Virus record (IMG/VR): IMGVR_UViG_3300009508_000011
Span: 1 to 64,000 of that record
Reading direction: 5' to 3' (one strand)
Length of the DNA: 64,000 nucleotides
The translations under genes and the position numbers were made by a program. Shown in pieces: positions 32,554-53,363 of the stretch. Positions within the stretch are counted from its first letter, which is position 1. Each line of letters begins with the position of its first letter. The notes under the pieces are model-generated. The model was not told the origin of the DNA, did no database searches, and worked only from the letters and a program-made list of their open reading frames with translations.

Positions 32554-32892
32554 TTATGCGTCGTGCATATCGAATACGCCGTCTATGGTCAATTCATTGT
32601 ATTTACTTAAGAAAGATAAAAGCTCATCCACTTGTTCATCCGATGTAATAACGGTAACCTTTATATCATTGAATTTATTAACTGGGAATGTTGCATAATG
32701 TACAAATTCATTAATTTCGTGCATTAACGGTTTAAGGTCTTCGTCCATAGTCTTAATTGAAACCGTAACCTCCTTTCCATTTGGGCGTCCCATAACGGAT
32801 AGTCCCTTGGCAAAGGCACTTGGAGTTAAGACCTTTTTCTCGACCAATAATTCTTGCATTGTTAGTACGTGTTTCTTTACATTTTTCATCAT
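32554..32892 (-). CDS. Accessory early protein, paralogue of 53052-53363
   Basis: 112 aa behind the 46-bp cassette; aligns by eye with the 53052 ORF. Confidence 0.8.
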   Translation of the reverse strand: MMKNVKKHVLTMQELLVEKKVLTPSAFAKGLSVMGRPNGKEVTVSIKTMDEDLKPLMHEINEFVHYATFPVNKFNDIKVTVITSDEQVDELLSFLSKYNELTIDGVFDMHDA

Positions 32893-32924
32893 CTTTTCCT
32901 TTTATTTAAGATTAATATATTAAG

Positions 32925-32970
32925 TCACTAATGTAATATGTATCTATCGTTTTCTGGGAACGACAAAAAA
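32925..32970 (-). promoter_or_regulatory. 46-bp early promoter/stem-loop cassette, copy 1
   Basis: TCACTAATGTAATATGTATCTATCGTTTTCTGGGAACGACAAAAAA; minus strand holds CATATTAC. Confidence 0.8.
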
Positions 32971-33014
32971 TACTGAGCCACTTCTTGTTATAGACCAATC
33001 TAAAGAGTTAAATC

Positions 33015-33248
33015 ATGGGGTTAGAATCATCACCAATAGACCCAGAACAATTAAAGTTCGGGGACACAATTTATTCCCATAAAGGACATAGACCATTTGT
33101 GGTTATGGGGTTTTGTAAATACGCACTTGACTGTAGTATCACTATGGTTAAATTTGTTAATGTTAAAGCTACTGCTGATACGCCACCCGGTCAAGAGTGG
33201 GTGTTAGACCTATCAACAGTTCTAAAGATGTTTGTTAAGGATATTTAA
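33015..33248 (+). CDS. Small hypothetical protein (SH3-like/DUF1653-like pattern)
   Basis: GDTIYSHKGHRPFVVMG pattern; coupled to the polymerase start. Confidence 0.6.
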   Translation: MGLESSPIDPEQLKFGDTIYSHKGHRPFVVMGFCKYALDCSITMVKFVNVKATADTPPGQEWVLDLSTVLKMFVKDI

Positions 33249-33249
33249 A

Positions 33250-35031
33250 ATGAGTAATTTACCAAAAGGTGTTAAAGGTTACGAGTGTAAACACGCCTTC
33301 TACACAGAAGCTACTGATAAGTCAAAAGACGACATAGTCTTAGTTAAACGTAATGTTCACCATGAAGACGGTACGATTACTCCAGAAGTAACCTTTGTGG
33401 AAAACTATGAGCGTGAGTTCTGGGTTGTCAATGAAGCACACCGTACCTACACTGAAAAGAAAGCGTGGGAAGATGAATTCAAATGTCGTAAGTTTAAAAC
33501 TCGTCAAAGTTACCTTACCGATAAAGTTACTCGTGCTTTAGGCCGTAGTCCTAGTGGTTGGGTTAGTAAGTCTATCCTATTCCGTTCACCTTACGTGTAT
33601 GGGGCAGATATAACAACCTCTGCTTTAATCAAGCGAGCATACATGGATAAGTTTGAAGATTGTACTTCTGAATCTACCATGGGCGTAATGGATATCGAGA
33701 CCGATGTTGTTAATGGTAACGGTAGTGAGATAATTTCTGCCTCATTTACTTTCCGCGATAATATTTACCTTGCCTACACTGAAAAGTTCATGGGTAAGGT
33801 TATGGACTACTCTAAGAAACTACAAGAGAAATATGAGTTCTATATCTCAGGCCTTGCTGATGATTTAGATAAAGTCTTACAGGGTAATGAAATCACTAAG
33901 AAGCGCAGACAGGTACTTGAACGTGCTCAGGCTACCTTACGTGCTCGTTCTAAAGTTAAGATACACACAAAGCTTGTGGGGAGTCCTGCACAGGTAACTA
34001 ACTATGTATTTAACGCAGCCCATGAACATAAGCCAGACTTCATTGCTTTCTGGAACATGAACTTCGATTTACCCAAAATGATTGCTTCCTTAGAACAAGC
34101 TGGAGTAGACCCTAAGCATGTTTTCTGTGAACCAACTTTACCTGAGAGATATAAACGTTTCAACTATAGAGCTGGTCAAGCCATTAAGCAAATTGCTGGT
34201 GGACGTACAATGTCTAAACATCCTGCCGACCTTTGGCATGTTGTTGATGCACCTGCATCATTCTACTTAATCGATGCTATGTCAGTATTTAAACAGGTAC
34301 GTGTAACCGAGGGTAACCGTAATAGTTATTCGTTAGATGCAATACTAACAGGTGAACTGAACCTTGGTAAACTTAAGTTTACTGAAGCAGACCACCTTAC
34401 TGGTCTAGATTGGCACGTATTCATGCAGACCAACTACAAACTAGAATATCTTATCTATAACATCTTTGACTGTATGTCAATTGAAATCTTAGATGATAAA
34501 AATAAAGATATTGCGCTAACGGTACCTACTCTTTGTCAGCATTCTGACTACGCTAGATTCCCTAGTACACCTAGACGCCTGTGTGACGACATGCACTTCT
34601 TCTTGAAGCAACACAAGAAAGTTATATCTACAACATCAGATGCCATGTCTGAAGATTTAGATAAATACGTTGTTGGCTCTAACGATTGGATTGTTACACT
34701 ACCTAGTCACTTGGTTGCAGATAACGGTCTTAAGTTATTAGATGAAGCACCGCATATAAGTTCAATGCTTCGTGTACACGTTGCCGACCTAGATGTTGCG
34801 TCTAGTTACCCTAACACAGGTTCTTTCATGAACATGTCAATGGAAACTACTAAACGTGAATTGGTTGGTGTTGGTGATATTAGTGAGTACGATAAACGCA
34901 TGTCTGGTTTGAACCTAACCGCCGCACGTACTAACGCAGTGGAATGTGCTGGTACATTCTTTAAGTTCCCTACCATGGATTCAATGTTAACTGAATTCCG
35001 TAAACAAAGAGAAGCTGGAGAATTACAGTAA
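33250..35031 (+). CDS. Split family-B DNA polymerase, exonuclease plus motif-A subunit (gp82-like)
   Basis: ExoI MDIETD, ExoII FWNMNFD, ExoIII YNIFDC, motif A DLDVASSYP; motifs B/C absent. Confidence 0.88.
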   Translation: MSNLPKGVKGYECKHAFYTEATDKSKDDIVLVKRNVHHEDGTITPEVTFVENYEREFWVVNEAHRTYTEKKAWEDEFKCRKFKTRQSYLTDKVTRALGRSPSGWVSKSILFRSPYVYGADITTSALIKRAYMDKFEDCTSESTMGVMDIETDVVNGNGSEIISASFTFRDNIYLAYTEKFMGKVMDYSKKLQEKYEFYISGLADDLDKVLQGNEITKKRRQVLERAQATLRARSKVKIHTKLVGSPAQVTNYVFNAAHEHKPDFIAFWNMNFDLPKMIASLEQAGVDPKHVFCEPTLPERYKRFNYRAGQAIKQIAGGRTMSKHPADLWHVVDAPASFYLIDAMSVFKQVRVTEGNRNSYSLDAILTGELNLGKLKFTEADHLTGLDWHVFMQTNYKLEYLIYNIFDCMSIEILDDKNKDIALTVPTLCQHSDYARFPSTPRRLCDDMHFFLKQHKKVISTTSDAMSEDLDKYVVGSNDWIVTLPSHLVADNGLKLLDEAPHISSMLRVHVADLDVASSYPNTGSFMNMSMETTKRELVGVGDISEYDKRMSGLNLTAARTNAVECAGTFFKFPTMDSMLTEFRKQREAGELQ

Positions 35032-35050
35032 GAGGCAAAAAAAAATAAGT

Positions 35051-35080
35051 GGAGAGCTTCGGCTCTCCCTTATGCCGTAT
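35051..35080. terminator. Bidirectional terminator plus TTATGCCGT; 30 bp identical to 43507-43536
   Basis: GGAGAGC-TTCG-GCTCTCC CTTATGCCGTAT. Confidence 0.9.
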
Positions 35081-35134
35081 AAACTTTATGTCCAGTTTCT
35101 ATTAGTTATAGAACATTCAAATTTATAGAATTCA

Positions 35135-35542
35135 CTAAACATCCCGCTCTCCGTTACCAATACGCTTAAGGTTATTGTCATCGTAGAAGTTATCTACCTT
35201 AGCCATAGTCCAAGCTAACTTGAATCGTGTCCACCACCTTAAAGGCTTAACACGCATTCTACGTTTAGCTTCTCTGTACTTCCTGCCATTTCCAAACTCA
35301 AACATGTACTGACCAGAATAATACTTAACTTCAATAAACCAAAAGTTTATGAACATAAAGTTCATGAGGATAGTATCCCCATCACGTAACCACCTAGCTG
35401 AGGTGTCCCTTTCTAAGACGTCGCTAAGTTTATAAGAGGCCTCAATCGCTTCCTCTAATGCAGCTATTTCTTCTTCATTTAAATCCAATTTTTTATTACC
35501 CACGAAGTCTCTCCTTTTATTTAAACGGTATAGACGAGGCAC
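35135..35542 (-). CDS. Hypothetical protein
   Basis: 135-aa ORF; start uncertain. Confidence 0.6.
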   Translation of the reverse strand: MPRLYRLNKRRDFVGNKKLDLNEEEIAALEEAIEASYKLSDVLERDTSARWLRDGDTILMNFMFINFWFIEVKYYSGQYMFEFGNGRKYREAKRRMRVKPLRWWTRFKLAWTMAKVDNFYDDNNLKRIGNGERDV

Positions 35543-35565
35543 TAGGCCTCGCTATTTATTGGGTG

Positions 35566-35946
35566 TTAAACTTCTGGTTCAGGTGGTGGCTCTACAGGAG
35601 CAACTGTTGTTGTAACAGTGCGGTAAGCATAGCCATTTTCATCTCCAGTGCGTTGATAGAAATCGCCACGATAGCAAAGTAATGTAGTAACTGCATCGGT
35701 AACTTCTTCAAGACCATCTTCTAACCCATCATCAAATGCTTGCTTGATGTAGTCGTCAGAATCAATTGCTTCCGCAGGAACTTCGTACACAGTAGTAGAT
35801 TCTGGAATAGAACCATATACCTTACCATCAATGATGCCTTTAAGTACCATAGGACGCTTGGTATTTAGATTTACGGTGTGGTCCATTTCCACGAATTGGT
35901 CTGTGATTGCCGGGTCGTTAATTAAAATCAATTCAACTTTATCCAC
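35566..35946 (-). CDS. Hypothetical acidic protein
   Basis: GTG start with AGGAG RBS; 126 aa. Confidence 0.75.
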   Translation of the reverse strand: MDKVELILINDPAITDQFVEMDHTVNLNTKRPMVLKGIIDGKVYGSIPESTTVYEVPAEAIDSDDYIKQAFDDGLEDGLEEVTDAVTTLLCYRGDFYQRTGDENGYAYRTVTTTVAPVEPPPEPEV

Positions 35947-35959
35947 GAGTTTCTCCTAG

Positions 35960-36901
35960 TTAGAATATTAGTAGTTGACCAACCTCTATCAGAGAAGGGT
36001 CTTTAATATCGTTCTTTGCAACCAGTTCACCTACGGTTGTATTAAGACGACGTGCTATAGAATAAAGGGTATCCCCATTGGTAACTAGATATAAGTTCTC
36101 AGTTACGTCTATAAAGGTACCATATTTAAGAGTGGTGTAGCTAACACCATTGACAGACATAAGAACTTCTGGGTGTATATTGTACATCTCAGCAATCTCT
36201 CCAATGGTATCGCCACGTTGTACATAATACTTGGTTCCGTTAACAAACCCCATGATGTCCTGAACATATGCTCTGGTCTCACGGAAGTTAGGTAATAGGT
36301 AACCACCATTAACCTTGCGTAGGTTATTAGGCCCTGCATTGTACGCACCCAAAACAATCTTAAGTGTGTACTCACTATGTTCAGATAAAGGCTTATCGAA
36401 TAGTAAGTCGTGTAGGTAAGCTAGATAACGAGCAGCGGCATCTGCCGACTCAAAGTTATCCATTATGTTTTCAACACCAAGGAAGTTAGCAGTACGGGGA
36501 CGTATCTGAAACATACCTTTAGCATTACGGTGAGATACCCTAGTATTATCTAGATGTGTCTCTTTCATACCCATACCTAGGAGTACTTTACCCGGTAGAC
36601 CATATTGATAACCTATAACATCCAACTCATCTATAGTTGGTACATCATCTGGATATCTGTTAAACGTAACAGCAGTTACCTTAACGTCTTCTACTATTAC
36701 TTCTTCTTCAACCACAGGTTCCTCAACCTTAGGTTCTATTTTTACTGGTTCAGGAGCCGCAACTGGCTCCACCTTTACTACTGCTGGTTCTATTACTTTA
36801 GGTTCATGTAAGTATTCAGATAACATCCATGTAGTCATCACCGCAATAATTATCGTCGTTACAAACGAGTAACGGGTTAGGGTCTTCTTTAGCATTTTCA
36901 T
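35960..36901 (-). CDS. Membrane-anchored SLT lytic transglycosylase with two LysM domains
   Basis: N-terminal TM; KETH catalytic Glu, AKGMFQI, YNAGP; YYVQRGDTIGEIA and YLVTNGDTLYSIA LysM repeats. Confidence 0.9.
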   Translation of the reverse strand: MKMLKKTLTRYSFVTTIIIAVMTTWMLSEYLHEPKVIEPAVVKVEPVAAPEPVKIEPKVEEPVVEEEVIVEDVKVTAVTFNRYPDDVPTIDELDVIGYQYGLPGKVLLGMGMKETHLDNTRVSHRNAKGMFQIRPRTANFLGVENIMDNFESADAAARYLAYLHDLLFDKPLSEHSEYTLKIVLGAYNAGPNNLRKVNGGYLLPNFRETRAYVQDIMGFVNGTKYYVQRGDTIGEIAEMYNIHPEVLMSVNGVSYTTLKYGTFIDVTENLYLVTNGDTLYSIARRLNTTVGELVAKNDIKDPSLIEVGQLLIF

Positions 36902-36906
36902 ATCTC

Positions 36907-37161
36907 CTATACTAAAGTATATAATACAGAAAGTTCAGAATTAACTTCTTTAACTTCTTGGTTTCTGTATTTATTTAAGTGAGTAATCACTTGGTTTATT
37001 TTCTCTTTTATTTCTTTACGTGTTTTAGAGCTAACAATCCATTTGATATACTGTAAGATTTTGGCAGCCGTAGCAGCCTTAAGAGTATTGCATGTATCAG
37101 TACTCACAATAACAAGAGAGCTATGTAGAGTCTGTATACGAGTTTTAAATATGTTTGACAT
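36907..37161 (-). CDS. Small basic accessory early protein
   Basis: 84 aa behind cassette copy 2; AAGGA RBS. Confidence 0.75.
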   Translation of the reverse strand: MSNIFKTRIQTLHSSLVIVSTDTCNTLKAATAAKILQYIKWIVSSKTRKEIKEKINQVITHLNKYRNQEVKEVNSELSVLYTLV

Positions 37162-37222
37162 GACGATTTCCTTTTATTTAATCGCTATAAAATTAATGGG
37201 TTGAGTATATTTTCATACTACT

Positions 37223-37268
37223 TCACTAATGTAATATGTATCTATCGTTTTCTGGGAACGACAAAAAA
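37223..37268 (-). promoter_or_regulatory. 46-bp early promoter/stem-loop cassette, copy 2
   Basis: Identical to 32925-32970. Confidence 0.8.
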
Positions 37269-37272
37269 ATAA

Positions 37273-37292
37273 GGAGGGACCGAAGTCCCTCC
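37273..37292 (-). terminator. Terminator abutting the cassette
   Basis: GGAGGGAC-CGAA-GTCCCTCC. Confidence 0.85.
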
Positions 37293-37349
37293 CTGTCCAA
37301 GTCGGACAATGCTGTGGGCTCCAGAGAGATACAACCCACATAACATTGA

Positions 37350-37784
37350 CTACTTAGCTATACGTTTACGAATGGTTACAGAGGTGATTGAATCTATGCG
37401 GTTAATCCAACTGAAGTCAAACTCTTCTATAGTATCTTCAGGTGGTGCCATAGAGGTACTTTTAAACACATCACGGCAATCGGAGTACCTTTCAATTCCT
37501 CTAATGGTAGTGATGTAAATAATAAAATCGCCAGTGTCTATTTCTAACTCAGCAACTTTGACATTAGGCTTTTTAATCTCAACCAGTACGATTGCTTCCA
37601 ACTCCCCACGAATGAGAGCTTCCAATTTATCATAATCGATAACTCTTTTCTGGCCGCTGTCAGTGTTATGTTCATTAATGAAGTTCTTCCATGCTCCCTT
37701 GAAATTAACAACTTCAACTGGAGAGAATTCAAATGAGGTATCCTCATCATTTCTTAAAACCTTTCTTACCTTTATAGGGTACAT
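37350..37784 (-). CDS. Accessory hypothetical protein
   Basis: 144 aa; AAGGAAAAG RBS; CATATTATAC early-like motif near 37833-37842. Confidence 0.75.
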   Translation of the reverse strand: MYPIKVRKVLRNDEDTSFEFSPVEVVNFKGAWKNFINEHNTDSGQKRVIDYDKLEALIRGELEAIVLVEIKKPNVKVAELEIDTGDFIIYITTIRGIERYSDCRDVFKSTSMAPPEDTIEEFDFSWINRIDSITSVTIRKRIAK

Positions 37785-37877
37785 ATTACTTTCCTTTTAC
37801 ACAGTACTAAGTTTAATGCTTTATTGCACTAGTATAATATGTGTTTGTTATTGTTTATAATTAAAGGTGTAGGTATA

Positions 37878-38021
37878 ATGAAGAAACGAAGACTTCTTCT
37901 AGCATTACTTTTCGTATCACCGTTGTTAATAACCCCAGCTACCATTTTACTAGAACCAATGCACGGTGCGGATATGATAGATGGTTGGGTTGAGAGAACA
38001 ACAGATACTAGATATGCATAG
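37878..38021 (+). CDS. Small signal-peptide/membrane protein (47 aa)
   Basis: MKKRRLLLALLFVSPLLITPA; AGGT RBS; hairpin downstream. Confidence 0.55.
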   Translation: MKKRRLLLALLFVSPLLITPATILLEPMHGADMIDGWVERTTDTRYA

Positions 38022-38029
38022 ATGTCATA

Positions 38030-38055
38030 AGTAGGAGTCCCAACGGACTCCTACT
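38030..38055. terminator. Bidirectional terminator followed by TTATGCCGT
   Basis: AGTAGGAGTCC-CAAC-GGACTCCTACT. Confidence 0.85.
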
Positions 38056-38071
38056 CACTTATGCCGTTTAA

Positions 38072-38803
38072 CTACTTAGAACTGTAGAAACCACGAACCT
38101 TCTGACCAATGTCAGCTGTATATTCACTCAATAACGTATCGAATGAAATAGCTTTCAATGCAGCACCACGACCTTCTTTATCCGCAGTAGAAGACATCAA
38201 TACTAAGATGTTTTCGAAACGAGCACGAGAGGCAGGTGGAATACGCATTTCATTGAAACCACGGAATAACATGTTATCTGCGAACGTACCTGGGTACTCA
38301 GCCATGATATCCAAAGCACTACCGAACACTTCAGTAAATGCAGCACCTTCAAGGTTGTTAATGATTGCACTAATCGCTTGGTACAATTTCATTTGATTAC
38401 GTAAAATTGTTAACTTGTCATTAGGCTTGTTAGGAGCCATTGTAACAGCGTATTCAAGAATTGTTTGACAGTTAGGGTTTAACTCAGCTTTAACTTCTTC
38501 TGAGATTGTTTCTAACTCAACAGCAGGACTAGCAGGAGTTTCCTGACTATCACCAGCAGGCGGTGGAGTTTGCTCAGTGTCGTCGCCAGCAGGTGGGATA
38601 ACTACTGTTTCTTCAGAACCAGCCGCAGGACCTTCTTCGTCACCACTACCTTCAGTAGGAGTTCCTTCAGCAGGTTTGTTGTTAGATACTTGTTCAGGTG
38701 TGCCACCCGTTTGTTCAGTACCTTCAACTTTAGTTTCGGTGTTTTGCTCGTCACCAGATTTAACTTCTTGCTCTTTAGCAACTGTTTGTTTTTTTCTAGA
38801 CAT
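38072..38803 (-). CDS. Conserved hypothetical protein with disordered P/E/T-rich N-terminus
   Basis: ATG 38803 with GGAG; folded C-terminal half (EYAVTMAPNKP...NQMKLYQAI). Confidence 0.75.
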   Translation of the reverse strand: MSRKKQTVAKEQEVKSGDEQNTETKVEGTEQTGGTPEQVSNNKPAEGTPTEGSGDEEGPAAGSEETVVIPPAGDDTEQTPPPAGDSQETPASPAVELETISEEVKAELNPNCQTILEYAVTMAPNKPNDKLTILRNQMKLYQAISAIINNLEGAAFTEVFGSALDIMAEYPGTFADNMLFRGFNEMRIPPASRARFENILVLMSSTADKEGRGAALKAISFDTLLSEYTADIGQKVRGFYSSK

Positions 38804-38816
38804 TCTCATATCTCCG

Positions 38817-39266
38817 TTAGTTATCATTCATTTCGTCTTCGAGGTCTTGTAGGGCATTGTTCTTCTCTTTAGATATCTCTAAAGCAACATCCATGATGTG
38901 CTCAGCTATATCACGAGGCAACTCCATAAATTCATTCAAGGACAAACCAAAAGTTTTAGCGATGTTACGCTTACCAAACTTACGAATGGCATCATATAGT
39001 AAGCTGTCAGGACTGACCTGCTCAGCTGGATACATCTTAACGTAATCCAAGCCAGTAACATCTCTGTCATCGTAATTAGCTATACCATACGCTGTGTCGT
39101 AAGCCTCTACTTGCAAAGTCTTTGCGAGCAAAGTACTAATACCGGTTTGGGTTTCGAAAAGGTTGCTAAGTTCTTTACCGTACTCAACACCCCTCTCTAA
39201 TCCAAATTTAGTATCTATGACAGAGGTCGGCTTACCGTCGACTGAATTCTTTGCTCGCAGAGGGTA
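38817..39266 (-). CDS. Tail/baseplate assembly chaperone-like C-terminal ORF, probably reached by -1 frameshift
   Basis: Frame open from 39311 with no ATG/GTG/TTG before TTG 39131 and no RBS there; FGLSLNEFMELP resembles T4 gp51/tail-chaperone T motifs. Confidence 0.55.
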   Translation of the reverse strand, partial: YPLRAKNSVDGKPTSVIDTKFGLERGVEYGKELSNLFETQTGISTLLAKTLQVEAYDTAYGIANYDDRDVTGLDYVKMYPAEQVSPDSLLYDAIRKFGKRNIAKTFGLSLNEFMELPRDIAEHIMDVALEISKEKNNALQDLEDEMNDN

Positions 39267-40672
39267 AAAAAAGTTGTGGTCATATCCAAAGGAATGAATT
39301 CCGGAACATGTTCACCACGGATAACTTCATCAGGGTTATCACCTTTACCTTCTTTGATACTATCGCCGTAGCGGAGTCCACACGATGGACAATCAGTATT
39401 CGGGTAACCAATAACTGCAATGGTACAATCTTCAATGTACTCACCAATACTATTCATGATTGATGTACGGATTGTATCTTCCGCAGAAAAATCAGAACAG
39501 ATACTATCGATTGTATCGCGGTCATCGATAACGTCAGGAGATTCTTCATCACCCAAGTCGATAGATTTAATCCAGTGTGAATACTGACGCAGTGTTGCTA
39601 AACGACCTTGGTCTGTAATGTACTGGTCACGCTCACCACCTTTAAGTGGGATACGGAAAGCCTTGTCAACCATATTAACAGTAGTGTCAACCCAGTTGAA
39701 ACCAACTTGTTCAAAGTCGTATACGTTAGGAACCGCCAGTGTCATTTTAATACCGTCACCACCAAGTATTTCAGTAGTGCGAGTATTAAAAGCAAAGCCT
39801 TCTTGGTACTTAGCAATGTCTTCAGCAGTGTGTGTAGCATTACGCTTAGACATATGTTTCATTTGTTCTTCCGATAACTTAGAAGTATCAACTACACGTA
39901 AACGTGCAATGTTAACAGTACCTTCAGAAATATGATTACATTTAGTAATCTGTGCAACACAAGGTTCACGTAGCTCGTACCCATCAGGATACATAGTACA
40001 GACAATGCCCCATACCAGACTAGGTAAGTCAGTAGAAAGAATGATACGTTTTAGTTCTTCAGTATCTTTAGTACCAAAAGTAGTATCGTAAACATGCGCA
40101 AGGATAAAGTTAACTAAATAACTTTGAATATATACGCTACTGTTAGAGAAAATCATTCCGTTGGTAACACGACCAAGTGTAATCTTCTCTTGAGCAATGC
40201 GACGATTAAGTTCAAGAATAGCTGCGTTACTAGGAGCTTTAAGAGTTACCCACCCGCCAGTGTGCCATAAAGGAATAGGTACAATAGAACCAAGACCAAG
40301 TCTAGCCTTAACTTTCATTACTGCGGCTTCACCTGAAACAATACCAGAAGAGTCTTTAGCTCTTAAACGTGAAGCAGTGATTGGCTTATCATCGTGAGTA
40401 GGTCGGTTTGTCCATTCAGCTGAATCATCTTCCAAACGTTTACGGAATGTCTGACCACTCATTAAATGGTCTACACCTTTAGATACCGCTTCCATCCATA
40501 GTAAGGCATTTGGTCCAGCCTGTTGAATGTTTGGTAATTTACGAACATCTTTATCGATGGTGGTTGCGTTTGCATTGAGAAGCACTAAAGCTTCTTCAAT
40601 CGTTACAGGTTTTTCGCTAGGTTTATCACGTAGCGATTTAATCTCTGCCTTTGGGTCAATATTAACTGACAT
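39215..40672 (-). CDS. Baseplate hub/tail assembly protein (gp77-like; T4 gp26-like Cys motifs)
   Basis: 485 aa; PC...KC and CPSCG; ends with FF codons on a T7 run. Confidence 0.6.
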   Translation of the reverse strand: MSVNIDPKAEIKSLRDKPSEKPVTIEEALVLLNANATTIDKDVRKLPNIQQAGPNALLWMEAVSKGVDHLMSGQTFRKRLEDDSAEWTNRPTHDDKPITASRLRAKDSSGIVSGEAAVMKVKARLGLGSIVPIPLWHTGGWVTLKAPSNAAILELNRRIAQEKITLGRVTNGMIFSNSSVYIQSYLVNFILAHVYDTTFGTKDTEELKRIILSTDLPSLVWGIVCTMYPDGYELREPCVAQITKCNHISEGTVNIARLRVVDTSKLSEEQMKHMSKRNATHTAEDIAKYQEGFAFNTRTTEILGGDGIKMTLAVPNVYDFEQVGFNWVDTTVNMVDKAFRIPLKGGERDQYITDQGRLATLRQYSHWIKSIDLGDEESPDVIDDRDTIDSICSDFSAEDTIRTSIMNSIGEYIEDCTIAVIGYPNTDCPSCGLRYGDSIKEGKGDNPDEVIRGEHVPEFIPLDMTTTFFTLCEQRIQSTVSRPLS

Positions 40673-40674
40673 TA

Positions 40675-41124
40675 TTACTCCCCTAAATTACCGGCACACA
40701 GTTCGGTGATTTGCTCCATAGTTGGAGCTGTTAAGTTAATGAAACGGTCTTGCCATTGTTGATAGCGAGAACCAACACTGATTGTAATATTCATTACTTC
40801 AATGTCACTGGTCTTTTTACCAATGGCATCTATTTCAGACATACATTGTTTATCGATGTTGTCCAATTCGATTTTTAATGCATTCAGGTCACGAGCTAAG
40901 GTATTAGCAAGTGCACCAACAGCAACTTCATCCAGTTTAACTTCTGGATTACTTTTAGCTGCTATAATCAATTCTTTGATTTGGGCACTATTACCGATTA
41001 ACCCTAAACAGGCTGCTCGAATGTCTTTGGCTTCTGCGATAAAAGTATCACGCTTAGATGCTTTCTTAGCAACTTGCTTAACTGGTACTTTGCCATTTTT
41101 ACGTTTGTTATTAGATTCGGGCAT
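40675..41124 (-). CDS. Conserved hypothetical protein (gp78-like)
   Basis: 149 aa; basic N-terminus; TATG late-type motif upstream near 41168. Confidence 0.7.
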   Translation of the reverse strand: MPESNNKRKNGKVPVKQVAKKASKRDTFIAEAKDIRAACLGLIGNSAQIKELIIAAKSNPEVKLDEVAVGALANTLARDLNALKIELDNIDKQCMSEIDAIGKKTSDIEVMNITISVGSRYQQWQDRFINLTAPTMEQITELCAGNLGE

Positions 41125-41215
41125 CGATTGCTCCTTTAATATGAATTCAATTAAATTTAGTGCTACACATAACTAAACAGATGTGAGTAAAAAATACCCT
41201 AAGGAGAAATGAGTC

Positions 41216-42040: not shown

Positions 42041-42058
42041 CAGACCAAAGGTTTAAAC

Positions 42059-43536: not shown

Positions 43537-43596
43537 TTGTATGATAGTCGCCAGCTATCAATCGTGGTTAACTACATTAACTGAAAGGATTAAACC

Positions 43597-43989: not shown

Positions 43990-44027
43990 GGTGAAAAAAA
44001 AATAAGGAGGGCTAGTGCCCTCCGTAT

Positions 44028-44762: not shown

Positions 44763-44850
44763 CGTAATTCCTCATTTTATTTAAACTTTCCTTTTATGTG
44801 TTTACGAAAAAAATAAAGGGGCACTAAGCCCCTTTTTATTCTCAGCTATT

Positions 44851-45936: not shown

Positions 45937-46005
45937 TGTTTTTAACTCCTAATATAGGTGATATCACAATGAGTTGTTAGTTGCACTGCTACTCCATGGT
46001 ACTAC

Positions 46006-46767
46006 TTAGTTTATATCAAACTCACCACGCACTTTCATGCTGGAGTTCAGGTTGATGTTAATGCTAGCAACCCTTTTTCTAAAGTACAGAGGCATGTTAA
46101 TGAAAGCCAGTAGGTCTAGTATTGCTAAAGACATACTTGACGGTAACTTACCTGTATCCTTAATAACGACTAACAACTCCCCTTTTTCTTTCAACGCATA
46201 ATCGTCCTCCAATGTTTCTATAAACTTACTACACATAGCCGCACGACAAACTAATGTCTCTTGGTTCTGTATAGATATAACACCACACATCTTGGCATAG
46301 TGGAACAGCCAATCAGTTTGACCTTCAAAACAAGCCTTGTTACCAGCTTTGAGTTGTGTCAAATAGTACTCCATAGATTTCAGGATAATATCTGCCATGA
46401 AATCATTGCAACCTTGTAACTCTCGGATTTCTACCAATAGTTCATGTCGGTACACCTCTACCAAAGCCGCGTACACTCTAAATGAGCTAGGCATGGTGAA
46501 GTACTCTGACAAATACAAGTTTGACGGTATATCGGATATATCAACGTAATTAATTGTTTCAATATCCGGACTAGTTTGAGCGACAACTTCTTTTTGCTTT
46601 GGTTGTACCACCTCAGTTGGTGGTCTATGTACTTGGTTGTCTTTTGCTTCAGATTTTTCGGTAATAGCGCCGTCCCTAAGGTTGGCGCATTTAGCAGCTA
46701 CGTTTAATGCTACATTACCAAGAAATTCTAAAGTCCAGTTGGTTATGGGCTTTAGTCTTTCCTTCAC
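46006..46767 (-). CDS. Hypothetical protein
   Basis: 253 aa; GTGA overlap with helicase stop. Confidence 0.7.
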   Translation of the reverse strand: MKERLKPITNWTLEFLGNVALNVAAKCANLRDGAITEKSEAKDNQVHRPPTEVVQPKQKEVVAQTSPDIETINYVDISDIPSNLYLSEYFTMPSSFRVYAALVEVYRHELLVEIRELQGCNDFMADIILKSMEYYLTQLKAGNKACFEGQTDWLFHYAKMCGVISIQNQETLVCRAAMCSKFIETLEDDYALKEKGELLVVIKDTGKLPSSMSLAILDLLAFINMPLYFRKRVASININLNSSMKVRGEFDIN

Positions 46768-48293
46768 TTTAGCGGTCTCCCTATAATGAATGAAGATTCC
46801 ATTTCACCTATCGATTTAACACGTGGACGGAGAAGCTTTTTCTTCTTCTCATGGTACTCCATATGCTTCGGTAGATTCCTCGCTAGGATATACATGAAAT
46901 CTGGTTCAACATCAGGCCAATCCTTTAACTTCCTCAACCTGCCCACAATCTGGATATTAGCCTGACTGGAACTGATATTGGTCGTCATTAGACTGTAGCG
47001 TAACCCTGGTATATCAACACCAGTACCTGCCGATAAAGCAGTAGACACAGAAATGTCTGATTCCATAAGGACTTCATAGTCATCCTCAGAAATGTACCGT
47101 GCAACATCTAGGGTAGGGTTTCGTATAGCCAAGTGGTCAGCTATCTTACCACACATCTCCTTAGTAGCCGCAAAGACTAAAGCTTTCTGCCCGTCCTCTC
47201 TACGACCAACGTACATGTCATATACCAGAGCATCAATCATCGCTAGGTATTGTGCTAGATAAAGAGGCTTCTTAAGAATGCTTTCTTCAAATAGCGTATG
47301 ACTATACATCTTCTGTTGGTTGATGTGTCTAATCTTCTCAGGTTCCCACAACTCGTACGTAAGTGCTCGCACACGAATGTATCTATCGAAATCACCAGGC
47401 ATGAAACGCATTCGCTCAGGCCATTGTATCTGTAACATTTTGTTACGGAATGGTGAGTCGGTAGTTATAGTAGCCGATAGGAAGATGGTCTTAGGTATAT
47501 GTGCATACAAGTCCATCTTGAAGATTTGATGTTGGTTTTCATGGGCTTCGTCAACAACTCTTAATCCAACCCCTAGAACTTTCCACAGCTCCCAAGGTTT
47601 TATCGGATAACCTCTCAGCTTACCCATCTCGTAATCTTTATAGAAACGAGCAAGTGTTGTAGTTGAAGCAATGATAGCCTTGTAATTGAATTCTCCAGCC
47701 AGTGATAAATTGATTGCACTTAACAAAGCTTTACTGCCACGTATAACGCAAATCTCTTTCTTACTTAACTGTAGACATTCTTCAAGGTCACCAATCCATT
47801 TCTCGATATACTTACCACCCATTTGGAAACAGGTAAGTACCCCAAGAGTTTCAGCAGCTTTTTGACTACAGAAAGTTTTACCTTGTCCTGTAGCAAGTGT
47901 AACTACTTTAGATTCACCGGGGTCTTCCATATACTGGATTACCCGTGGTTGGTCATCTCTTGGTTGCCAATGGTCAGGAATACTGTAATTCACTTCATTA
48001 GGAGTGTACATTCGCTTATGCGTTATGTCAATCAGATGAATTGGAATGCCAGCGTTCTTTACCATATCGATGAATTCATCGTACTGGTTAATGTGGAAAC
48101 GATAATAGCTTCTGTCAGCACACGAGGCTGCATAGACTTTCTTAGCTTCCTTGTGAAACTTACCTCTCGCGTAGAATCCCGCCCACTCAATGAGAGGACG
48201 GAGAAAATTACCGATGAGAGGTCGCATACGAGGTGATATCTTAGTCACCGAGAAATGGTGACTATAAACAGATATGTTACAATATTGACTCAA
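46764..48293 (-). CDS. Superfamily 2 DEAH helicase (gp75-like)
   Basis: LATGQGKT, VVDEAH, LSAT, QIVGRLR. Confidence 0.92.
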   Translation of the reverse strand: MSQYCNISVYSHHFSVTKISPRMRPLIGNFLRPLIEWAGFYARGKFHKEAKKVYAASCADRSYYRFHINQYDEFIDMVKNAGIPIHLIDITHKRMYTPNEVNYSIPDHWQPRDDQPRVIQYMEDPGESKVVTLATGQGKTFCSQKAAETLGVLTCFQMGGKYIEKWIGDLEECLQLSKKEICVIRGSKALLSAINLSLAGEFNYKAIIASTTTLARFYKDYEMGKLRGYPIKPWELWKVLGVGLRVVDEAHENQHQIFKMDLYAHIPKTIFLSATITTDSPFRNKMLQIQWPERMRFMPGDFDRYIRVRALTYELWEPEKIRHINQQKMYSHTLFEESILKKPLYLAQYLAMIDALVYDMYVGRREDGQKALVFAATKEMCGKIADHLAIRNPTLDVARYISEDDYEVLMESDISVSTALSAGTGVDIPGLRYSLMTTNISSSQANIQIVGRLRKLKDWPDVEPDFMYILARNLPKHMEYHEKKKKLLRPRVKSIGEMESSFIIGRPLK

Positions 48294-48318
48294 AATTAAC
48301 CTCTCCCGTTGTTGCCAG

Positions 48319-50295
48319 TTACCCCGCTAGAATATTGTCGAAGTTGTGGTCAGGATTATTCTTGTTGATATAAGACGAAGCACGCATTATAACATCACCA
48401 TGTCTTTCAAATGCCATAGCCGCAGACATACTACGGTTAAACATATTCTCACGATGAATGTTAAACGATTCTTCCTCTTGACCAATAGGTGGACAATTTG
48501 AATTGGCCCGCACAGTTGATGTTACCATAGACGACAATAACAATATCTCAAGATGCAATACATTTACATTAGCTCTGCTATTTACAATATCGTAAAGTTT
48601 ACGCAGCGCCTCAGCAGAAGTCTTACATGCAAAGACACCATTACGACCTTTCTTCTCAATGAAGTTAGATATGCTTTTCATGTACTCAAGCATGTTCATG
48701 TGTCGTTGTGGCATTACCAAGAATGGTTTACTAAACGTCCAATGTGCTAAATCAATCACATAGTCGCCATAGTTATCAACTTCCCAACCGTACTTCTTCA
48801 AGTACTCTAGAAATTCATAAGTAAAGCTAGCTAGACGTGGTCCTACTGAAGTAGGTACAATATTATCCACGTTCTCATCTACACCTTTACTGTTTTTGAT
48901 TGTTCGTCTAATAACGATTTCAGCCATAGCAGCAAGTGTTGTAGTAGGGAGAATTTTAACATCAACAACTTCAGGGTTATTAATGTCTTCCAGATATTTA
49001 ACGTACTGTTCTGGAATAACTAACTTTGGACTTTGGTCTTTCAGGGTCATGTGGAATTGAATCTTAGACTGGTCAGTAGTGTTCAACTTAATGAACTCCG
49101 CATCACGAGCTTCTATATTCAAATGTTCAGCAACCGATGAACCATCTTCATGTTTGGTAGACATTACCTTTTGGGTTACGAATGAACATAACGCAATAGC
49201 ACTAATGTGTCCCAATCTAGTAGCCTGCTTATAATACATCTGACTTGGTATTGAATAACTCAAAGACCCACAGCATGTTTCACAGACCATATACTCATGA
49301 CGATGTTTACATTCCAAAGCAGAACGTAAGCGAATTAACTTACCTTCCAAATGTTTAGATTGCTTAGTAATTTCTTCCAGTTTACCATCTGCTGTAACAT
49401 GTACCTTACCAGCAAGATTACCAAGTGATTTCTTTGTAACTAAGAATTCAACTGTACCGGAAGTTCCACAGTCACCGGGAACTAAACCTTTTACGTATTG
49501 GTTTTGTAAAGATACTTTACGACCAAAGTACTCAGTAGCACGTAGAGGTTCAGTTGTAACTTTAAGTGCCTTAGTACCAGAGCGTGACTCCATAGCAGAA
49601 TCAGCAATCTTCTTAAGACCCTCAGCGTATCCCGGCATAACTGGTCTACGGAATATATTGGAATCGTAATCTGTTATAAAACCACGAGGACCAATAGCCT
49701 GTAATACCTGACCAACCGATATTAAAGATGCACGACACGCTACACAGACAGCATTGTCATTAAGTGTAGGACAGTTCATTATAATGTCAGTAATCTGGCG
49801 ATAGGTTTGCTCAAGACTAGCAGTACTAGGACGCGCTTCAGCCTTAGCTTCCTTTATTACAGGATGTTCTAACAGTTCAAGATAATCGAGAACTGAGATT
49901 GTTGTTACGTATGCTTCTAGTTCTTCACCAGTAAACACAAATACATTGTTAAAGATAATCATTGCCATACGGTTTAATAAATCCATATCGCGACAGATAC
50001 CTTGGTCGAAACATTCCCACAGAGGCCGTGAGATTAATTTCTTATGGACACTATTACCGAAAACAACATTACCGATATGGTGATGTGGCAATAGAGGTAA
50101 CTGAGGGAATTGACGATGGTAATCCCAATAGATAGTTGACACTATAGTCTTACGACCATTGAGTGTTTCTATTGTACCATCATCGAACTCCACCTGCATC
50201 GTTAACACGTCACAGTAACGTTCCATAAGTTCTTCCATCGAGAGAGGTAACAAGTCTCTCGCTTTAACTACGCCATCAAGGTGTATTGGATGCAT
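48319..50295 (-). CDS. Non-virion RNA polymerase beta' C-terminal subunit (gp74-like)
   Basis: IGPRGF, ESRSGTKAL, DCGT, LRSALEC...CETCCG, TQKVMSTKH trigger-loop equivalent. Confidence 0.9.
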   Translation of the reverse strand: MHPIHLDGVVKARDLLPLSMEELMERYCDVLTMQVEFDDGTIETLNGRKTIVSTIYWDYHRQFPQLPLLPHHHIGNVVFGNSVHKKLISRPLWECFDQGICRDMDLLNRMAMIIFNNVFVFTGEELEAYVTTISVLDYLELLEHPVIKEAKAEARPSTASLEQTYRQITDIIMNCPTLNDNAVCVACRASLISVGQVLQAIGPRGFITDYDSNIFRRPVMPGYAEGLKKIADSAMESRSGTKALKVTTEPLRATEYFGRKVSLQNQYVKGLVPGDCGTSGTVEFLVTKKSLGNLAGKVHVTADGKLEEITKQSKHLEGKLIRLRSALECKHRHEYMVCETCCGSLSYSIPSQMYYKQATRLGHISAIALCSFVTQKVMSTKHEDGSSVAEHLNIEARDAEFIKLNTTDQSKIQFHMTLKDQSPKLVIPEQYVKYLEDINNPEVVDVKILPTTTLAAMAEIVIRRTIKNSKGVDENVDNIVPTSVGPRLASFTYEFLEYLKKYGWEVDNYGDYVIDLAHWTFSKPFLVMPQRHMNMLEYMKSISNFIEKKGRNGVFACKTSAEALRKLYDIVNSRANVNVLHLEILLLSSMVTSTVRANSNCPPIGQEEESFNIHRENMFNRSMSAAMAFERHGDVIMRASSYINKNNPDHNFDNILAG

Positions 50296-50324
50296 AATTG
50301 AATATTTCCTTTTAAGTTAATTCG

Positions 50325-52493
50325 TTATTTACCAGGTTTATACGGAGCGTATCTAAATTCAACGCCACCGCACATCATCAAATGTTTCATGAGTTGCAAT
50401 GGACGTGAGTTACCACGAGGTATTTTCTTACGGTTAACAACACAATCAATATCGGTAGGTTTCTCAGCCGTCATTATATTGTGGTTAATTTCTTCTGATG
50501 AATACAACGAGTTAGTTCTATCCAACAATTCCGCTACTATATCTGGGTCCATAACCGCAGACATTAGACGTACCTCTGATTCACCTGCAAAACGCACAGG
50601 AGATTCACGATAAGGGTTAAGATATTTATCCGCTCTACCCAACTGTACAACAATGCCGTGATGTTGACGCTTAGCAATTGAAGTAGTTGACCAATCTTCA
50701 CCAGTTTTATCTAGCAACATCATGTACTTAGTATCAATGGCTACAGGACGCTTAGTAGTAATCATCTTACCTGAGTTACCACGATAGGTAACAGGACCGA
50801 CAATACTTTTACAATTAGCTTCTATATCCTTGACTTGCTGAATACCGATGTTAGGACTATTTGGTGGCAGCATTAAAGTAATGGCTTCTTGGTCAGTTAG
50901 TTTAGGATTACCCACTTCACGAACATGATTATCTTGTTTATCTTTACTATCAAGATGTTTCATGCAATACCAATACATATACGGCGACGCTGCTTTATAA
51001 TACGCCATTAGAATCTGATAACCTTCTTCCAATGATGCACAAGCACGAACACGTCTAGCACATTGTGTACTGGCTTGGTTAGTCCACTGCTCAAATATCT
51101 GACCAACATTAGAACGCTTAATTACTGAAAGCGGGTCTTTAATAACATCTGCTACAATACCACAAGCAGTAGTAGGCATATCAGCATCTGGACGAATACC
51201 AACTATTACACCTTTTGTACCGTGAGTATCCGTAATCTTGTAACCGATTGTTGGAACCTTACGATAGGCATAAGTTATTTCAATGTTGAAGTCATCTAGA
51301 GGGGCTTTGTTCTTGGTGCGAACAACTCTATCCTTACTTGAGTCATTAAAGTTAGCATACGCTTCAACTACCCAAGAATGGAAAGCAGGAGTTATATCCA
51401 AGTTACCACGACGTTTACTATTGTTCTGCTGATAAAGCTCTATTATTTTTCTATAGAACAAATCCTTACTTTGCACATACTTCAACATCTCGTCATCCAT
51501 TCCAGTAGGAGTGGTTCGATATCTAGCATTGTGGTCAGTTAGTATTTCAACATCTACAATAGTTGCACCAGGCTGAGCATAAATCGTTTTGTCAAATTCG
51601 ATGTCTACTCTATCACCCAACAGATTACGAGGATGTAAATCTGAGATGGTTAAGTTTTCATCTATCGTACGGAAAGCCATAACTAAACCGTCTTCACGAA
51701 TTTTCTCACCGGGACCAGGGAAAGGTTTATAGTGATTCTCATCACCGTACAGATTAAGTGGGAATATATGCTTACCACAAGAAGCTGTACGAGTACCTAA
51801 CATAGTCGTTGCCAACTTACGTTGATAACTCTCACTAATTTCAAAACCATCCTCAATGATACCTGGGACAGTCATGTAAGCTACGTTAGTTTCAATACCG
51901 TACTCGTAGTTACCTTCATTATCTACACAAGGAGAATCTGCAAGTACTGTACCTTTACCAACATTGCCACCTTTAGTGATGCGTTGTAAAGCATGTGTGT
52001 TCTGTTTGTATTTCCAACCCAGACTTGTGTGCTGGAAGAAGTATTTCTCAAGTAGGATACTTCCGATTTCTTTTGTTTCAAAATCTTCATATACTACCAA
52101 GGTAGAAGGGTTTTCTTTAATAGCTCCCTGAGATACCTGCTTAGCATATTTAGGGAACACACCAAGGATTGTTGCATTGACAGGAATGCGTTGATTAAAA
52201 GTGTACTTACCAAATTCACGTTCCGTACCAGTAAGGTTACGACGTACTGTAGAGCCTTCAGTTACCAAACGTTGTTTAAGGTGAGATGCTTGCATCTGCT
52301 GACGAGATGCTGAGTTAACGGCTACCCAAGGATTCAAATTTGTTGGAGCACCAACAAGTTCAATATCTAATTCGTTGACTAAACTGGCCTTCCCCTCATC
52401 GTCAAGGGTCACGAACAGTTCTGTCTGTAAATCCATATACAATGGTTCACCGTCCATATCCGTGATATGAAGAAATCGTTTATCATCAATCAT
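50325..52493 (-). CDS. Non-virion RNA polymerase beta C-terminal subunit (gp71-73-like), uninterrupted
   Basis: GYKITDTHGTKG, PLSVIKRSNVGQIFE, VRFAGESEVR. Confidence 0.92.
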   Translation of the reverse strand: MIDDKRFLHITDMDGEPLYMDLQTELFVTLDDEGKASLVNELDIELVGAPTNLNPWVAVNSASRQQMQASHLKQRLVTEGSTVRRNLTGTEREFGKYTFNQRIPVNATILGVFPKYAKQVSQGAIKENPSTLVVYEDFETKEIGSILLEKYFFQHTSLGWKYKQNTHALQRITKGGNVGKGTVLADSPCVDNEGNYEYGIETNVAYMTVPGIIEDGFEISESYQRKLATTMLGTRTASCGKHIFPLNLYGDENHYKPFPGPGEKIREDGLVMAFRTIDENLTISDLHPRNLLGDRVDIEFDKTIYAQPGATIVDVEILTDHNARYRTTPTGMDDEMLKYVQSKDLFYRKIIELYQQNNSKRRGNLDITPAFHSWVVEAYANFNDSSKDRVVRTKNKAPLDDFNIEITYAYRKVPTIGYKITDTHGTKGVIVGIRPDADMPTTACGIVADVIKDPLSVIKRSNVGQIFEQWTNQASTQCARRVRACASLEEGYQILMAYYKAASPYMYWYCMKHLDSKDKQDNHVREVGNPKLTDQEAITLMLPPNSPNIGIQQVKDIEANCKSIVGPVTYRGNSGKMITTKRPVAIDTKYMMLLDKTGEDWSTTSIAKRQHHGIVVQLGRADKYLNPYRESPVRFAGESEVRLMSAVMDPDIVAELLDRTNSLYSSEEINHNIMTAEKPTDIDCVVNRKKIPRGNSRPLQLMKHLMMCGGVEFRYAPYKPGK

Positions 52494-52615
52494 TCTTATA
52501 GTTTCCTTTTATTTTATTAAGAGTGTATGCCATTAGATAATATATGTTTATAATTATTTAATCGGGTAGGTATCTCTTTTTATGTTTAGTTCTTAGAAGC
52601 TTCGGAGACCAGCTA

Positions 52616-52951
52616 ATGGATATCACCAAAAGCATGAATAGTGAAGGAGCTGACATTTTCTACGACTCCGATTTCCGGAGTGTTCTGGAAGACCATGTCC
52701 CTCTACTGAGAGATGATGCTGCTACAGAAATAGTTAATGTCAAATCTAACGTAGCCTATAAATTTGAATACGATTTAACTGGCTATTTATCATCTATTAA
52801 TGTACCACATTACTTACATTGGATAACAATGAGAATTAATGGATGGAAGAAGGATACAGAGTTCTTCAACCCAACTATGATTCGAATTCCGCATCGTAAT
52901 AGTGTAAATAAAATAAAACAAATGTTTGAAGCAACCACTACAAAAAAATAG
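52616..52951 (+). CDS. Small conserved protein, LysM/T4 gp53-like baseplate wedge candidate
   Basis: HWITMRING...IRIP pattern; TATG motif at 52581; GGAG RBS. Confidence 0.5.
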   Translation: MDITKSMNSEGADIFYDSDFRSVLEDHVPLLRDDAATEIVNVKSNVAYKFEYDLTGYLSSINVPHYLHWITMRINGWKKDTEFFNPTMIRIPHRNSVNKIKQMFEATTTKK

Positions 52952-53051
52952 ATGGCTGCGTATTTTTTTCACTTAAAAAGCAGGGGATTCTCAGGAATCC
53001 TCGCTTATGCCGTTCGGTTAAAACAAAAAAAAGAGGGAATCCCCTCTTTCT

Positions 53052-53363
53052 TCATCGGATAGATATTCTACTTACAGAACAACTAGATTTCCCCACTAAC
53101 TTCTCAAGCTCTATGGCATCACTATCCTCATCCACATCGATGACGACCGCTAATGTTTTTGGTTTATTGACAGTGTAATAATCCAATAATTTGTTTAGGT
53201 CAGGAACCATTGAGTCCTTATCTTCACCAGTCAGTAATATGGTAACCTTGCCACTATGTGGACCACTGACATATATACCCTTTTTAATCGTGCAAGGAGT
53301 AATAACTCCTAACTCTACCAATTTCTCATGTGTGCCCATTGGTGCTTTATTAACGTTTCTCAT
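53052..53363 (-). CDS. Accessory early protein, paralogue of 32554-32892
   Basis: 103 aa behind cassette copy 3. Confidence 0.8.
   Translation of the reverse strand: MRNVNKAPMGTHEKLVELGVITPCTIKKGIYVSGPHSGKVTILLTGEDKDSMVPDLNKLLDYYTVNKPKTLAVVIDVDEDSDAIELEKLVGKSSCSVSRISIR

Follow-up and report, generated by a model that had tools for sequence, protein, structure and literature searches.

Two small open reading frames (ORFs) lying 20 kb apart in a marine phage genome, here called paralogues A and B, are each preceded by a near-identical 46-bp stretch of intergenic DNA, the cassette. Both lie in bases 1–64,000 (the window) of the 206,117-bp virus record IMGVR_UViG_3300009508_000011 (G000), which carries direct terminal repeats. 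On the reading that we favour, and which we hold to be probable, the conserved DNA is made up of phage promoter and ribosome-binding leader modules, and the two genes are old duplicated accessory units, similar to phage morons and to the PeSL elements of T4-type phages, that occupy variable slots in the genome. The paralogy of the two ORFs, the shared promoter-like and ribosome-binding modules, the terminators and the variable presence of the units are all read directly from the DNA. Coordinates are collected in Table 1.

BLASTP aligns A and B with 37% identity over 90 amino acids (aa; E 4e-11), and in phmmer searches of all 948 genomic ORFs with 40 aa or more each finds the other at E ~3e-8, with no other match to either, a result with which tblastn agrees. 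The Smith–Waterman score of the pair is 106, against a mean of 27.7 (sd 4.9) and a maximum of 59 in 5000 shuffles. The proposal made in a first-pass annotation of the window, that the two ORFs are divergent paralogues, thus stands, shuffled controls included, and a hidden Markov model (HMM) search for further paralogues produced one probable distant third (ORF 176622–176966, discussed below) and no other member in the genome. The GC contents of the two genes (36.3% and 38.5%; gene mean 39.9%, sd 2.5%) are not atypical and fit an origin within the phage lineage better than recent capture from a foreign source. In our view A and B arose when an orphan gene was duplicated, long ago, within the genome. 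Table 1 gives A from its first ATG; its true start is likely to be the second ATG, at 32889, giving 111 aa, because the spacing from the Shine–Dalgarno (SD) sequence to this ATG equals that of the other copies and because public gene calls have 111 aa.

The cassette is equally real. A 35-nt cassette pattern has three matches in the window, where none is expected, and five in the whole genome, all of them intergenic, on the minus (coding) strand and 44–75 nt upstream of a start codon (44–53 nt in the case of the two paralogues). The first-pass annotation was therefore correct in placing a shared 46-bp element in front of both A and B, but the element does not belong to them alone: three of the five copies (2, 4 and 5) stand ahead of genes unrelated to the paralogues. 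Each cassette comprises, in order, a terminator T-tail, the 25 nt GTCGTTYCCARAAAACRATAGATAC and the core ATATTAC-NN-TAGTGA. The first six bases belong to a terminator-tail motif, since a recurrent hairpin-TTTAT…GTCGT motif forms the tail at the start of the cassette and the terminator GTCGT tail often abuts the ribosome-binding leader. The core itself, ATATTAC-N2-TAGTGA, occurs seven times in this genome and three times in that of a 218-kb relative (G001, contig L024; ~75% nucleotide identity to G000 over 169 kb aligned), each time upstream of a gene. A wider class, AAACA-TATATTAY-N3-4-GTGA, adds ~9 further intergenic, gene-oriented sites with the core (C/T)ATATTA(C/T), to give ~15 copies in all. 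G001 was the only relative recovered in an exact 17-mer scan of IMG/VR, the other 19 of the 20 loci being chance matches in unrelated contigs; a more distant relative, L056, was also used for comparison.

The cassette core is identical, or identical in seven of eight positions, to the octamer TATATTAC, which, on the strength of an enrichment test, we propose as the core of the phiKZ early promoters. In the phiKZ genome this octamer is strand-enriched (33 forward versus 9 reverse occurrences; controls 10 and 12) and lies ~50 nt ahead of ORFs that include PHIKZ005 and PHIKZ006; a full-text literature search for TATATTAC returned noise only. The 28–32 early promoters of phiKZ are AT-rich and are read by the virion RNA polymerase (RNAP) (PMC8244752, PMC10914365, PMC7598289), and every RNAP-encoding jumbo phage has an AT-rich motif upstream of its early operons (PMC7598289). 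The likeness extends to an AT-rich conserved core of ~10 nt, to a core-to-ATG distance of ~45–75 nt and to the presence of a class member upstream of a gene for a subunit of the non-virion RNAP (nvRNAP). In contrast to the phiKZ description, the five cassettes have the 25-nt upstream extension and a downstream TAGTGA box. Given oriented copies ahead of start codons, unrelated downstream genes, a shared core class and the phiKZ octamer, we read the cassette as a phage-RNAP promoter, probably of the early class that the virion enzyme would transcribe. The assignment to the early class is by analogy with phiKZ and is anchored by the wider-class member that directly precedes the nvRNAP beta orthologue, a gene that is early in phiKZ (PMC8287921); membership of the nvRNAP gene holds for the wider class and not for the cassette subclass itself. 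No sigma-70-like site was found in either paralogue region, where 2.3–3.7 would be expected, and a sigma-70 reading of the cassette was rejected for this reason.

This parallel draws on the identity of the phage. The window is gene-dense, has ~40% GC and codes mostly on the minus strand. Its nvRNAP beta-like ORF has 34–36% identity to RNAP beta-like proteins of 303 phiKZ-like jumbo phages and aligns end to end with gp71 and gp73 in the phiKZ genome, which form the beta-like subunit of the non-virion polymerase and are encoded by early genes (PMC8287921). It is a single 722-aa ORF in the window, the phiKZ counterpart being split by gp72 into gp71 and gp73. Near-identical DNA is found in marine, aquaculture, seawater and sponge metagenomes (14 studies). 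From the 206-kb record with direct terminal repeats, the orthology of the RNAP gene and the marine occurrence, we identify the source as an uncultured marine chimallivirus-like (phiKZ-like) jumbo phage with multisubunit RNA polymerases of its own.

The leader between cassette and start codon is of a more general kind. With up to one mismatch allowed, TTAAATAAAAGGAA stands ahead of 21 start codons here and of 16 in G001; it belongs to the most over-represented intergenic word family of the genome. The shared leader AAATAAAAGGAAAAGAT of the first-pass annotation is thus present in both paralogues without being specific to them, and is best understood as the general translation-initiation context of the phage. 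The 5′ untranslated region (UTR) predicted for B contains a perfect 8-bp hairpin (GAUACUAA/UUAGUAUC) at 53393–53412(−) that has no equivalent in that of A; TTAGATACTAAATC, which forms part of the B leader, recurs behind a promoter at G000 93821.

Each paralogue is monocistronic, with the order terminator tail or T-run, cassette, leader, ORF, hairpin plus T-run and then the motif AAAAAATAC, which may restart transcription for the next conserved gene. Cassette copies 2–5 directly follow a GC-rich hairpin and T-tail; at copy 1 only the T-run was seen, with no upstream hairpin identified. The flanking genes belong to the conserved jumbo-phage core (phrog_2767, the DNA polymerase phrog_3011, phrog_3520 and the nvRNAP beta gene). 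Terminators in this genome are stereotyped, a GC-rich hairpin being followed by TTTATTTTTTT or TTTATGTCGT (window 17822 and 44818; G000 77402 and 67813).

These parts suggest how the units would work. An early-class phage promoter would begin directly after the T-tail of the upstream gene's terminator and would be followed by a standard strong ribosome-binding leader, so that each duplicate would sit in a self-contained promoter–leader–ORF–terminator unit inserted in a variable slot between core genes. Transcription by the virion RNAP early in infection would, by analogy with phiKZ, give strong and independent expression of each small gene. The regulatory DNA would be near-identical because recognition by polymerase and ribosome constrains it and because whole modules were copied, leaving the coding parts free to drift to 37% identity.

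Table 1. Positions of the paralogues, cassettes and associated features (window coordinates unless marked G000)
Feature	Position	Strand	Remarks
Paralogue A ORF	32554..32892	−	112 aa from first ATG; small soluble protein, pI 5.5
Paralogue A, predicted 5′UTR and initiation region	32893..32924	−	ends …AATCTTAAATAAAAGGAAAAGAT; unstructured; matches genome-wide ribosome-binding context
Cassette copy 1	32925..32970	−	T-run, then GTCGTTCCCAGAAAACGATAGATAC, then core ATATTACATTAGTGA; ahead of paralogue A
Terminator-like hairpin and 10-T run (intrinsic type)	32516..32545	−	directly after paralogue A; −12 kcal/mol, z −2.3
AAAAATAC motif, second promoter-like class	32485..32492	−	ahead of conserved 422-aa gene 30998–32266
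AAAAATAC motif	32966..32973	+	overlaps T-run of cassette copy 1
Paralogue B ORF	53052..53363	−	103 aa, pI 6.7
Paralogue B, predicted 5′UTR	53364..53416	−	longer than that of A; 8-bp hairpin 53393–53412; ends TTAAATAAAAGGAAAAGATAA
Cassette copy 3	53417..53462	−	GTCGTTCCCAGAAAACAATAGATAC, then ATATTACAATAGTGA; ahead of paralogue B
Terminator-like hairpin of upstream 426-aa gene	53461..53486	−	T-tail enters cassette copy 3
Terminator-like hairpin and T-run	53026..53053	−	directly after paralogue B
Second hairpin after paralogue B	52985–53000	−	
Cassette copy 2	37230..37262	−	ahead of unrelated 84-aa ORF and transglycosylase
84-aa ORF behind copy 2	36907–37161		followed by SLT+LysM transglycosylase 35960–36901
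Cassette copy 4	178560 (G000)	−	ahead of five-gene operon of small ORFs
Candidate third paralogue	176622–176966 (G000)	−	last gene of operon behind copy 4
Cassette copy 5	198681 (G000)	−	ahead of 211-aa gene with HExxH motif
Wider-class promoter-like core TAAACATATATTATCTAATGG	52537..52544	−	directly upstream of nvRNAP beta gene
nvRNAP beta-like gene, phiKZ gp71–73 orthologue	50325..52493	−	Pfam RNA_pol_Rpb2_6 (Rpb2_6)

The motif that follows the two units, (T)AAAAAATAC, marks a second abundant promoter-like class with ~20 intergenic sites genome-wide, for example 32485–32492(−), 52960–52967(−) and 41190(+). It is often followed 15–25 nt on by a TATAGT/TATAAT-like box and resembles the description of phiKZ middle promoters, an A-rich repeat with TACT centred at −22 (PMC8244752). 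The minus-strand AAAAATAC motif beyond paralogue A may restart transcription for the 422-aa gene, and its plus-strand counterpart is likely to be the promoter of a divergent 77-aa ORF and the DNA-polymerase operon (33015 and 33232, +). At 32964–32973 the T-run of cassette copy 1 is at the same time the A-run of the plus-strand AAAAATAC, giving back-to-back divergent promoter-like signals; G001 retains the plus-strand motif at this slot without the cassette and paralogue A.

The units vary in presence among relatives and strains. G001 encodes neither paralogue. The slot that holds A measures 908 bp in G000 and 270 bp in G001 (only the edges of the alignment were used here, the interior not being meaningful), and the slot of B is filled in G001 by unrelated ORFs of about the same total length. 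In G001 a terminator and a AAAAAATAC promoter directly abut; in G000 copy 5 and its gene separate the two as a clean insertion of 760 bp. Variation is also seen within the population: a 16.9-kb contig of run X2 has two differences in 994 bp of flank (>99% identical), and in it 538 bp at 32494–33031, comprising terminator, gene, leader and cassette, are replaced by 92 other bp, while runs X3 and X4 (~97% identity) retain A. All told, three of the five cassette-led units are missing or replaced in relatives, with boundaries, known from three events, at the junction of terminator tail and cassette (TTATG/TCGTT…) and at the next terminator tail. The idea put forward in the first pass that the conserved DNA and its gene act as a portable unit is borne out by these indels and replacements at cassette borders.

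Two further strain differences were seen in the window. A 464-bp stretch (35058–35521) is missing from the contigs of all four runs compared, with 35057 joined to 35522 and, in three of the four, 26 other letters at the joint; the ORF concerned, 35135–35542(−) (135 aa, next to the DNA-polymerase gene), is a strain-specific accessory gene with no Pfam or PHROG match. Compared with window 53570–54850, the 426-aa gene upstream of paralogue B in a 207-kb contig (L051) carries 48 differences in 1.3 kb. Not one is found in the 2 kb beyond it, which take in the promoter, paralogue B, intergenic DNA and the beginning of the RNAP gene, and so abrupt a change suggests that strains have recombined at the cassette or close to it. 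A joint that ‘goes back’ in strain contigs was set aside as cross-mapping of repeat copies.

Phage morons were reportedly described by Juhala and colleagues in 2000. Classic morons were defined in temperate lambdoid phages, where it is often the host RNAP that expresses them from the prophage. The units described here share with them a single non-core ORF with an upstream promoter-like element and a downstream terminator-like hairpin, a location between genes that a related phage has side by side or almost so, and a presence that varies among strains. They differ in that they lie in a virulent-type jumbo phage, have a promoter of the phage-RNAP type and do not show the foreign base composition expected of morons (36–38.5% GC, compared with 40% for the genome). 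Morons have been discussed in connection with the monocistronic transcription units of virulent phages, phiKZ among them (PMC10914365).

A second parallel is with the PeSL of T4-type phages, cassettes of a terminator stem-loop, an early promoter and an SD sequence that lie upstream of ORFans at the boundaries of indels and replacements distinguishing close relatives (PMC2839356, PMC4122927). The cassettes are likewise composite intergenic arrangements of terminator, promoter and SD sequence ahead of ORFans at indel borders, and one lies next to the DNA-polymerase locus, as do the PeSL bordering g43 in RB49 and phi1. It is possible, although in our estimate less likely than not, that they are also recombination modules of this type, in which exchange between cassettes excises, inserts and swaps ORFs, perhaps by way of mini-circles, and that such exchange made the duplication of A and B. 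This proposal extends the explanation that we prefer and does not exclude it. The indel boundaries at the junctions of terminator tail and cassette, the turnover of three of five units and the mosaic leaders speak for it, as does the PeSL precedent. However, the breakpoints come from three events only; no circular or excision joint was seen in the contigs examined, in which rare forms would not be visible; the five copies (~15 with the wider class) compare with ~50 PeSL per T4-type genome; and the sigma-70 consensus of PeSL promoters is absent.

Several points weigh against the reading of the conserved DNA as promoter and leader and of A and B as accessory units. Promoter activity, start site and temporal class are argued by analogy with phiKZ. 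The upstream half GTCGTTYCCARAAAACRATAGATAC is confined to the five cassettes, being absent from the general class, and may represent either an operator bound by a regulator or the hallmark of a separate class. Copy 2 has 2–3 mismatches to the paralogous copies and six to its G001 orthologue, as gene conversion would give. Lastly, the fold matches described below are weak, the two structural models point to different folds, and none of the matches reaches the significance guides of the tools.

The second of these points would be met if the cassette were a promoter of another temporal class, or one under operator control, with its upstream half bound by a regulator or a modified polymerase to define a separate regulon. 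The 25-nt half is kept in the G001 and L056 orthologues; the general class has a different context, AAATTATTT-AAACA; and the genes behind copy 2 include an SLT+LysM transglycosylase, whose role would not readily be taken for an early one. Nevertheless, the core is the same as that of the general class and the phiKZ octamer, copy 3 and the L041 variant both disrupt the small upstream-half hairpin, and no candidate regulator was identified, and we consider such a regulon unlikely. The hairpin, TCGTT/AACGA, was rejected as a conserved structure on the same grounds.

The third point bears on the explanation first offered for this DNA, namely that ongoing gene conversion keeps the cassettes alike while their cargo is under diversifying selection against a variable host target. 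The promoter copies are 89–98% alike, the proteins are 37% identical and synonymous substitutions (dS) separating the paralogues have reached saturation; a neutral promoter would by then have decayed too, and either purifying selection or gene conversion could maintain the element. Besides the affinities of copy 2, the mosaic nature of copy 5, in which the 5′ half equals copy 4 and the leader equals copy 1, favours conversion, and some copy-and-paste or recombination among promoter copies is likely. Yet conversion within one genome cannot explain why the element is kept at orthologous sites in other genomes. Copy 4 differs from its G001 orthologue at one of 46 positions, against ~75% identity of the genomes; L056, whose orthologous protein is ~40% identical, still has a recognisable terminator hairpin and, with nine differences in 46, a cassette in the corresponding position; and the copy-4 signature TTTCCAAA(A/T)AAC is common to both orthologues and is not found in copies 1–3. 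The leader, for its part, is the genome-wide consensus. As the element is shared with unrelated genes and retained at orthologous sites in two other phage genomes while the coding sequence has diverged far more, its conservation is explained by function and homogenisation is not required.

Diversifying selection fares no better. At least 24 contigs, drawn from many samples, encode the B protein without a single difference, and in the eight contigs whose DNA was compared, the gene and its promoter have 0–1 nucleotide changes, against 20–48 in 1.3 kb of the upstream neighbour. Paralogue A is known from three near-identical variants and one at 89% identity, relative to which the ratio of non-synonymous to synonymous rates (dN/dS) is 0.60, from small counts (12 non-synonymous and 5 synonymous changes). 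This exceeds the 0.19 of the neighbouring gene, as the first explanation would have it, but is below 1 and is best read as relaxed constraint on a dispensable gene, not as positive selection. Moreover, an expanding, diversifying family should have more than two members and a possible distant third. Taken together, these results make gene conversion coupled to an arms race improbable.

That the conserved DNA is instead a cis-regulatory RNA (a riboswitch or leader) or a transposable repeat (a miniature inverted-repeat transposable element or integron attC) is scarcely credible: repetition and strong conservation in intergenic DNA ahead of genes, and a weak 5-bp inverted repeat in the upstream half, speak for it, but a scan of the whole window at the gathering threshold matched no Rfam family, conservation is strongest ahead of the predicted start site, the copies do not all preserve the inverted repeat and the copy-1 leader is unstructured, all copies have a single orientation and a fixed relation to start codons, and the insertion junctions inspected have no terminal inverted repeats or target duplications.

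The proteins that the units encode form a tiny orphan family. Searches of Pfam and PHROGs with both paralogues and the other cassette-led genes gave nothing usable, a match to phrog_10040 (E 7e-4) being rejected as covering 43 residues of a 299-position profile, and tblastn found no match in 50,697 cultured phage records. A word-index protein search recovered the protein itself and one 89% variant only. An exhaustive HMM search of 1.84 billion representative proteins returned five genuine small clusters; five long hits (942–1461 aa, matched in 4–9 stretches) were to filamin, cadherin or low-complexity repeats and were rejected because summed repeat scores inflate significance.

ORF 176622–176966(−) is the probable third, distant paralogue. 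Its Smith–Waterman score with B, 58, was reached by none of 5000 shuffles; it is the top non-self match of a two-sequence HMM (E 0.03); hhalign aligns its N-terminal 42 columns at E 8e-5 and a probability of 62%; and two of the HMM hits (P0005 and P0008), together with a G001 homologue, group with it. Unlike A and B, this gene is conserved in relatives. Two genes away, G000 175019–175543(−) (L006:1020–1544; 174 aa) matches the Pfam family Tad2-like (Thoeris anti-defence 2) at E 1e-6 and 29.6 bits (cutoff 25), and a weak Tad2-like match occurs at the syntenic place in L056. The 211-aa product of the gene behind cassette copy 5 (G000 198003–198638(−); L007:4004–4639) is very acidic (isoelectric point, pI, 4.7), contains the HExxH sequence HEVTH and has two paralogues of 32–34% identity elsewhere in G001.

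Structure prediction gave AlphaFold2 (AF2) models of A (pLDDT 81.5) and, from an independent alignment, of the third paralogue (70.9), both with the element order H-H-E-E-H-E-H-E (H, helix; E, strand), and the proteins would accordingly be small soluble alpha/beta proteins. The model of A did not lead to a significant fold match: the best VIA Z was 5.9 and the best Foldseek E values were 0.098 (PDB) and 0.021 (BFVD), while several STAS chains (Z 4.2–5.8) fell below the informative level of the tool and an acetyltransferase matched weakly (Z 4.5). The model of the third paralogue matched the NUDT6 N-domain (Z 8.7), antizyme (Z 8.2) and AcrVA5 (Z 7.0; 84 of 95 residues), and Foldseek matched it to the GNAT toxins TacT and AtaT (E 2e-3 to 6e-3). 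Searches of the ESM Atlas found no usable match by features and, by shape, generic alpha/beta rows with TM-scores of 0.5–0.6. We treat GNAT-like, antizyme-like and STAS-like folds as leads, not assignments. In size (~100–115 aa) and H-H-E-E-H-E-H-E topology the proteins recall small GNAT/antizyme folds such as AcrVA5, a 92-aa anti-CRISPR acetyltransferase (PDB 6iuf), but unlike GNAT proteins they have no acetyl-CoA motif (R/Q-x-x-G-x-G/A in the right place) recognisable by eye and no Pfam match. Because they are small, soluble, orphan and moron-like, vary among strains and have a third member near a Tad2-like gene, we suggest, tentatively, that the products may be dispensable accessories, expressed early, that act in host takeover or against host defences.

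Morons, modular shuffling of the PeSL type and conserved early-promoter motifs in jumbo phages that encode RNAPs were all known already; what is new is their occurrence in this uncultured lineage from the sea, and with it a tiny family of orphan proteins. The arrangement of the two genes is ordinary phage genome architecture. A more far-reaching picture is speculative and in our judgement rather unlikely: nucleus-forming jumbo phages would have their own PeSL equivalent, in which cassettes of terminator and virion-RNAP promoter copy, paste and swap early ORFans among slots in the conserved core, and the family 32554/53052/176622 would be a new type of small anti-defence protein made early in infection and perhaps, like AcrVA5, resembling a mini-GNAT.

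The wider lesson is that near-identical DNA ahead of diverged phage genes betokens a promoter and ribosome-binding module held in common, where concerted evolution coupled with an arms race had been read into it. For this uncultured marine chimallivirus-like phage, the analysis yields a candidate consensus for early promoters as well as another promoter-like class, AAAAAATAC, and points to moron/PeSL-style modular turnover in the phage group, with presence/absence polymorphism at the population level. The orphan family and the strain-specific accessory genes are candidates for host-takeover and anti-defence screens.

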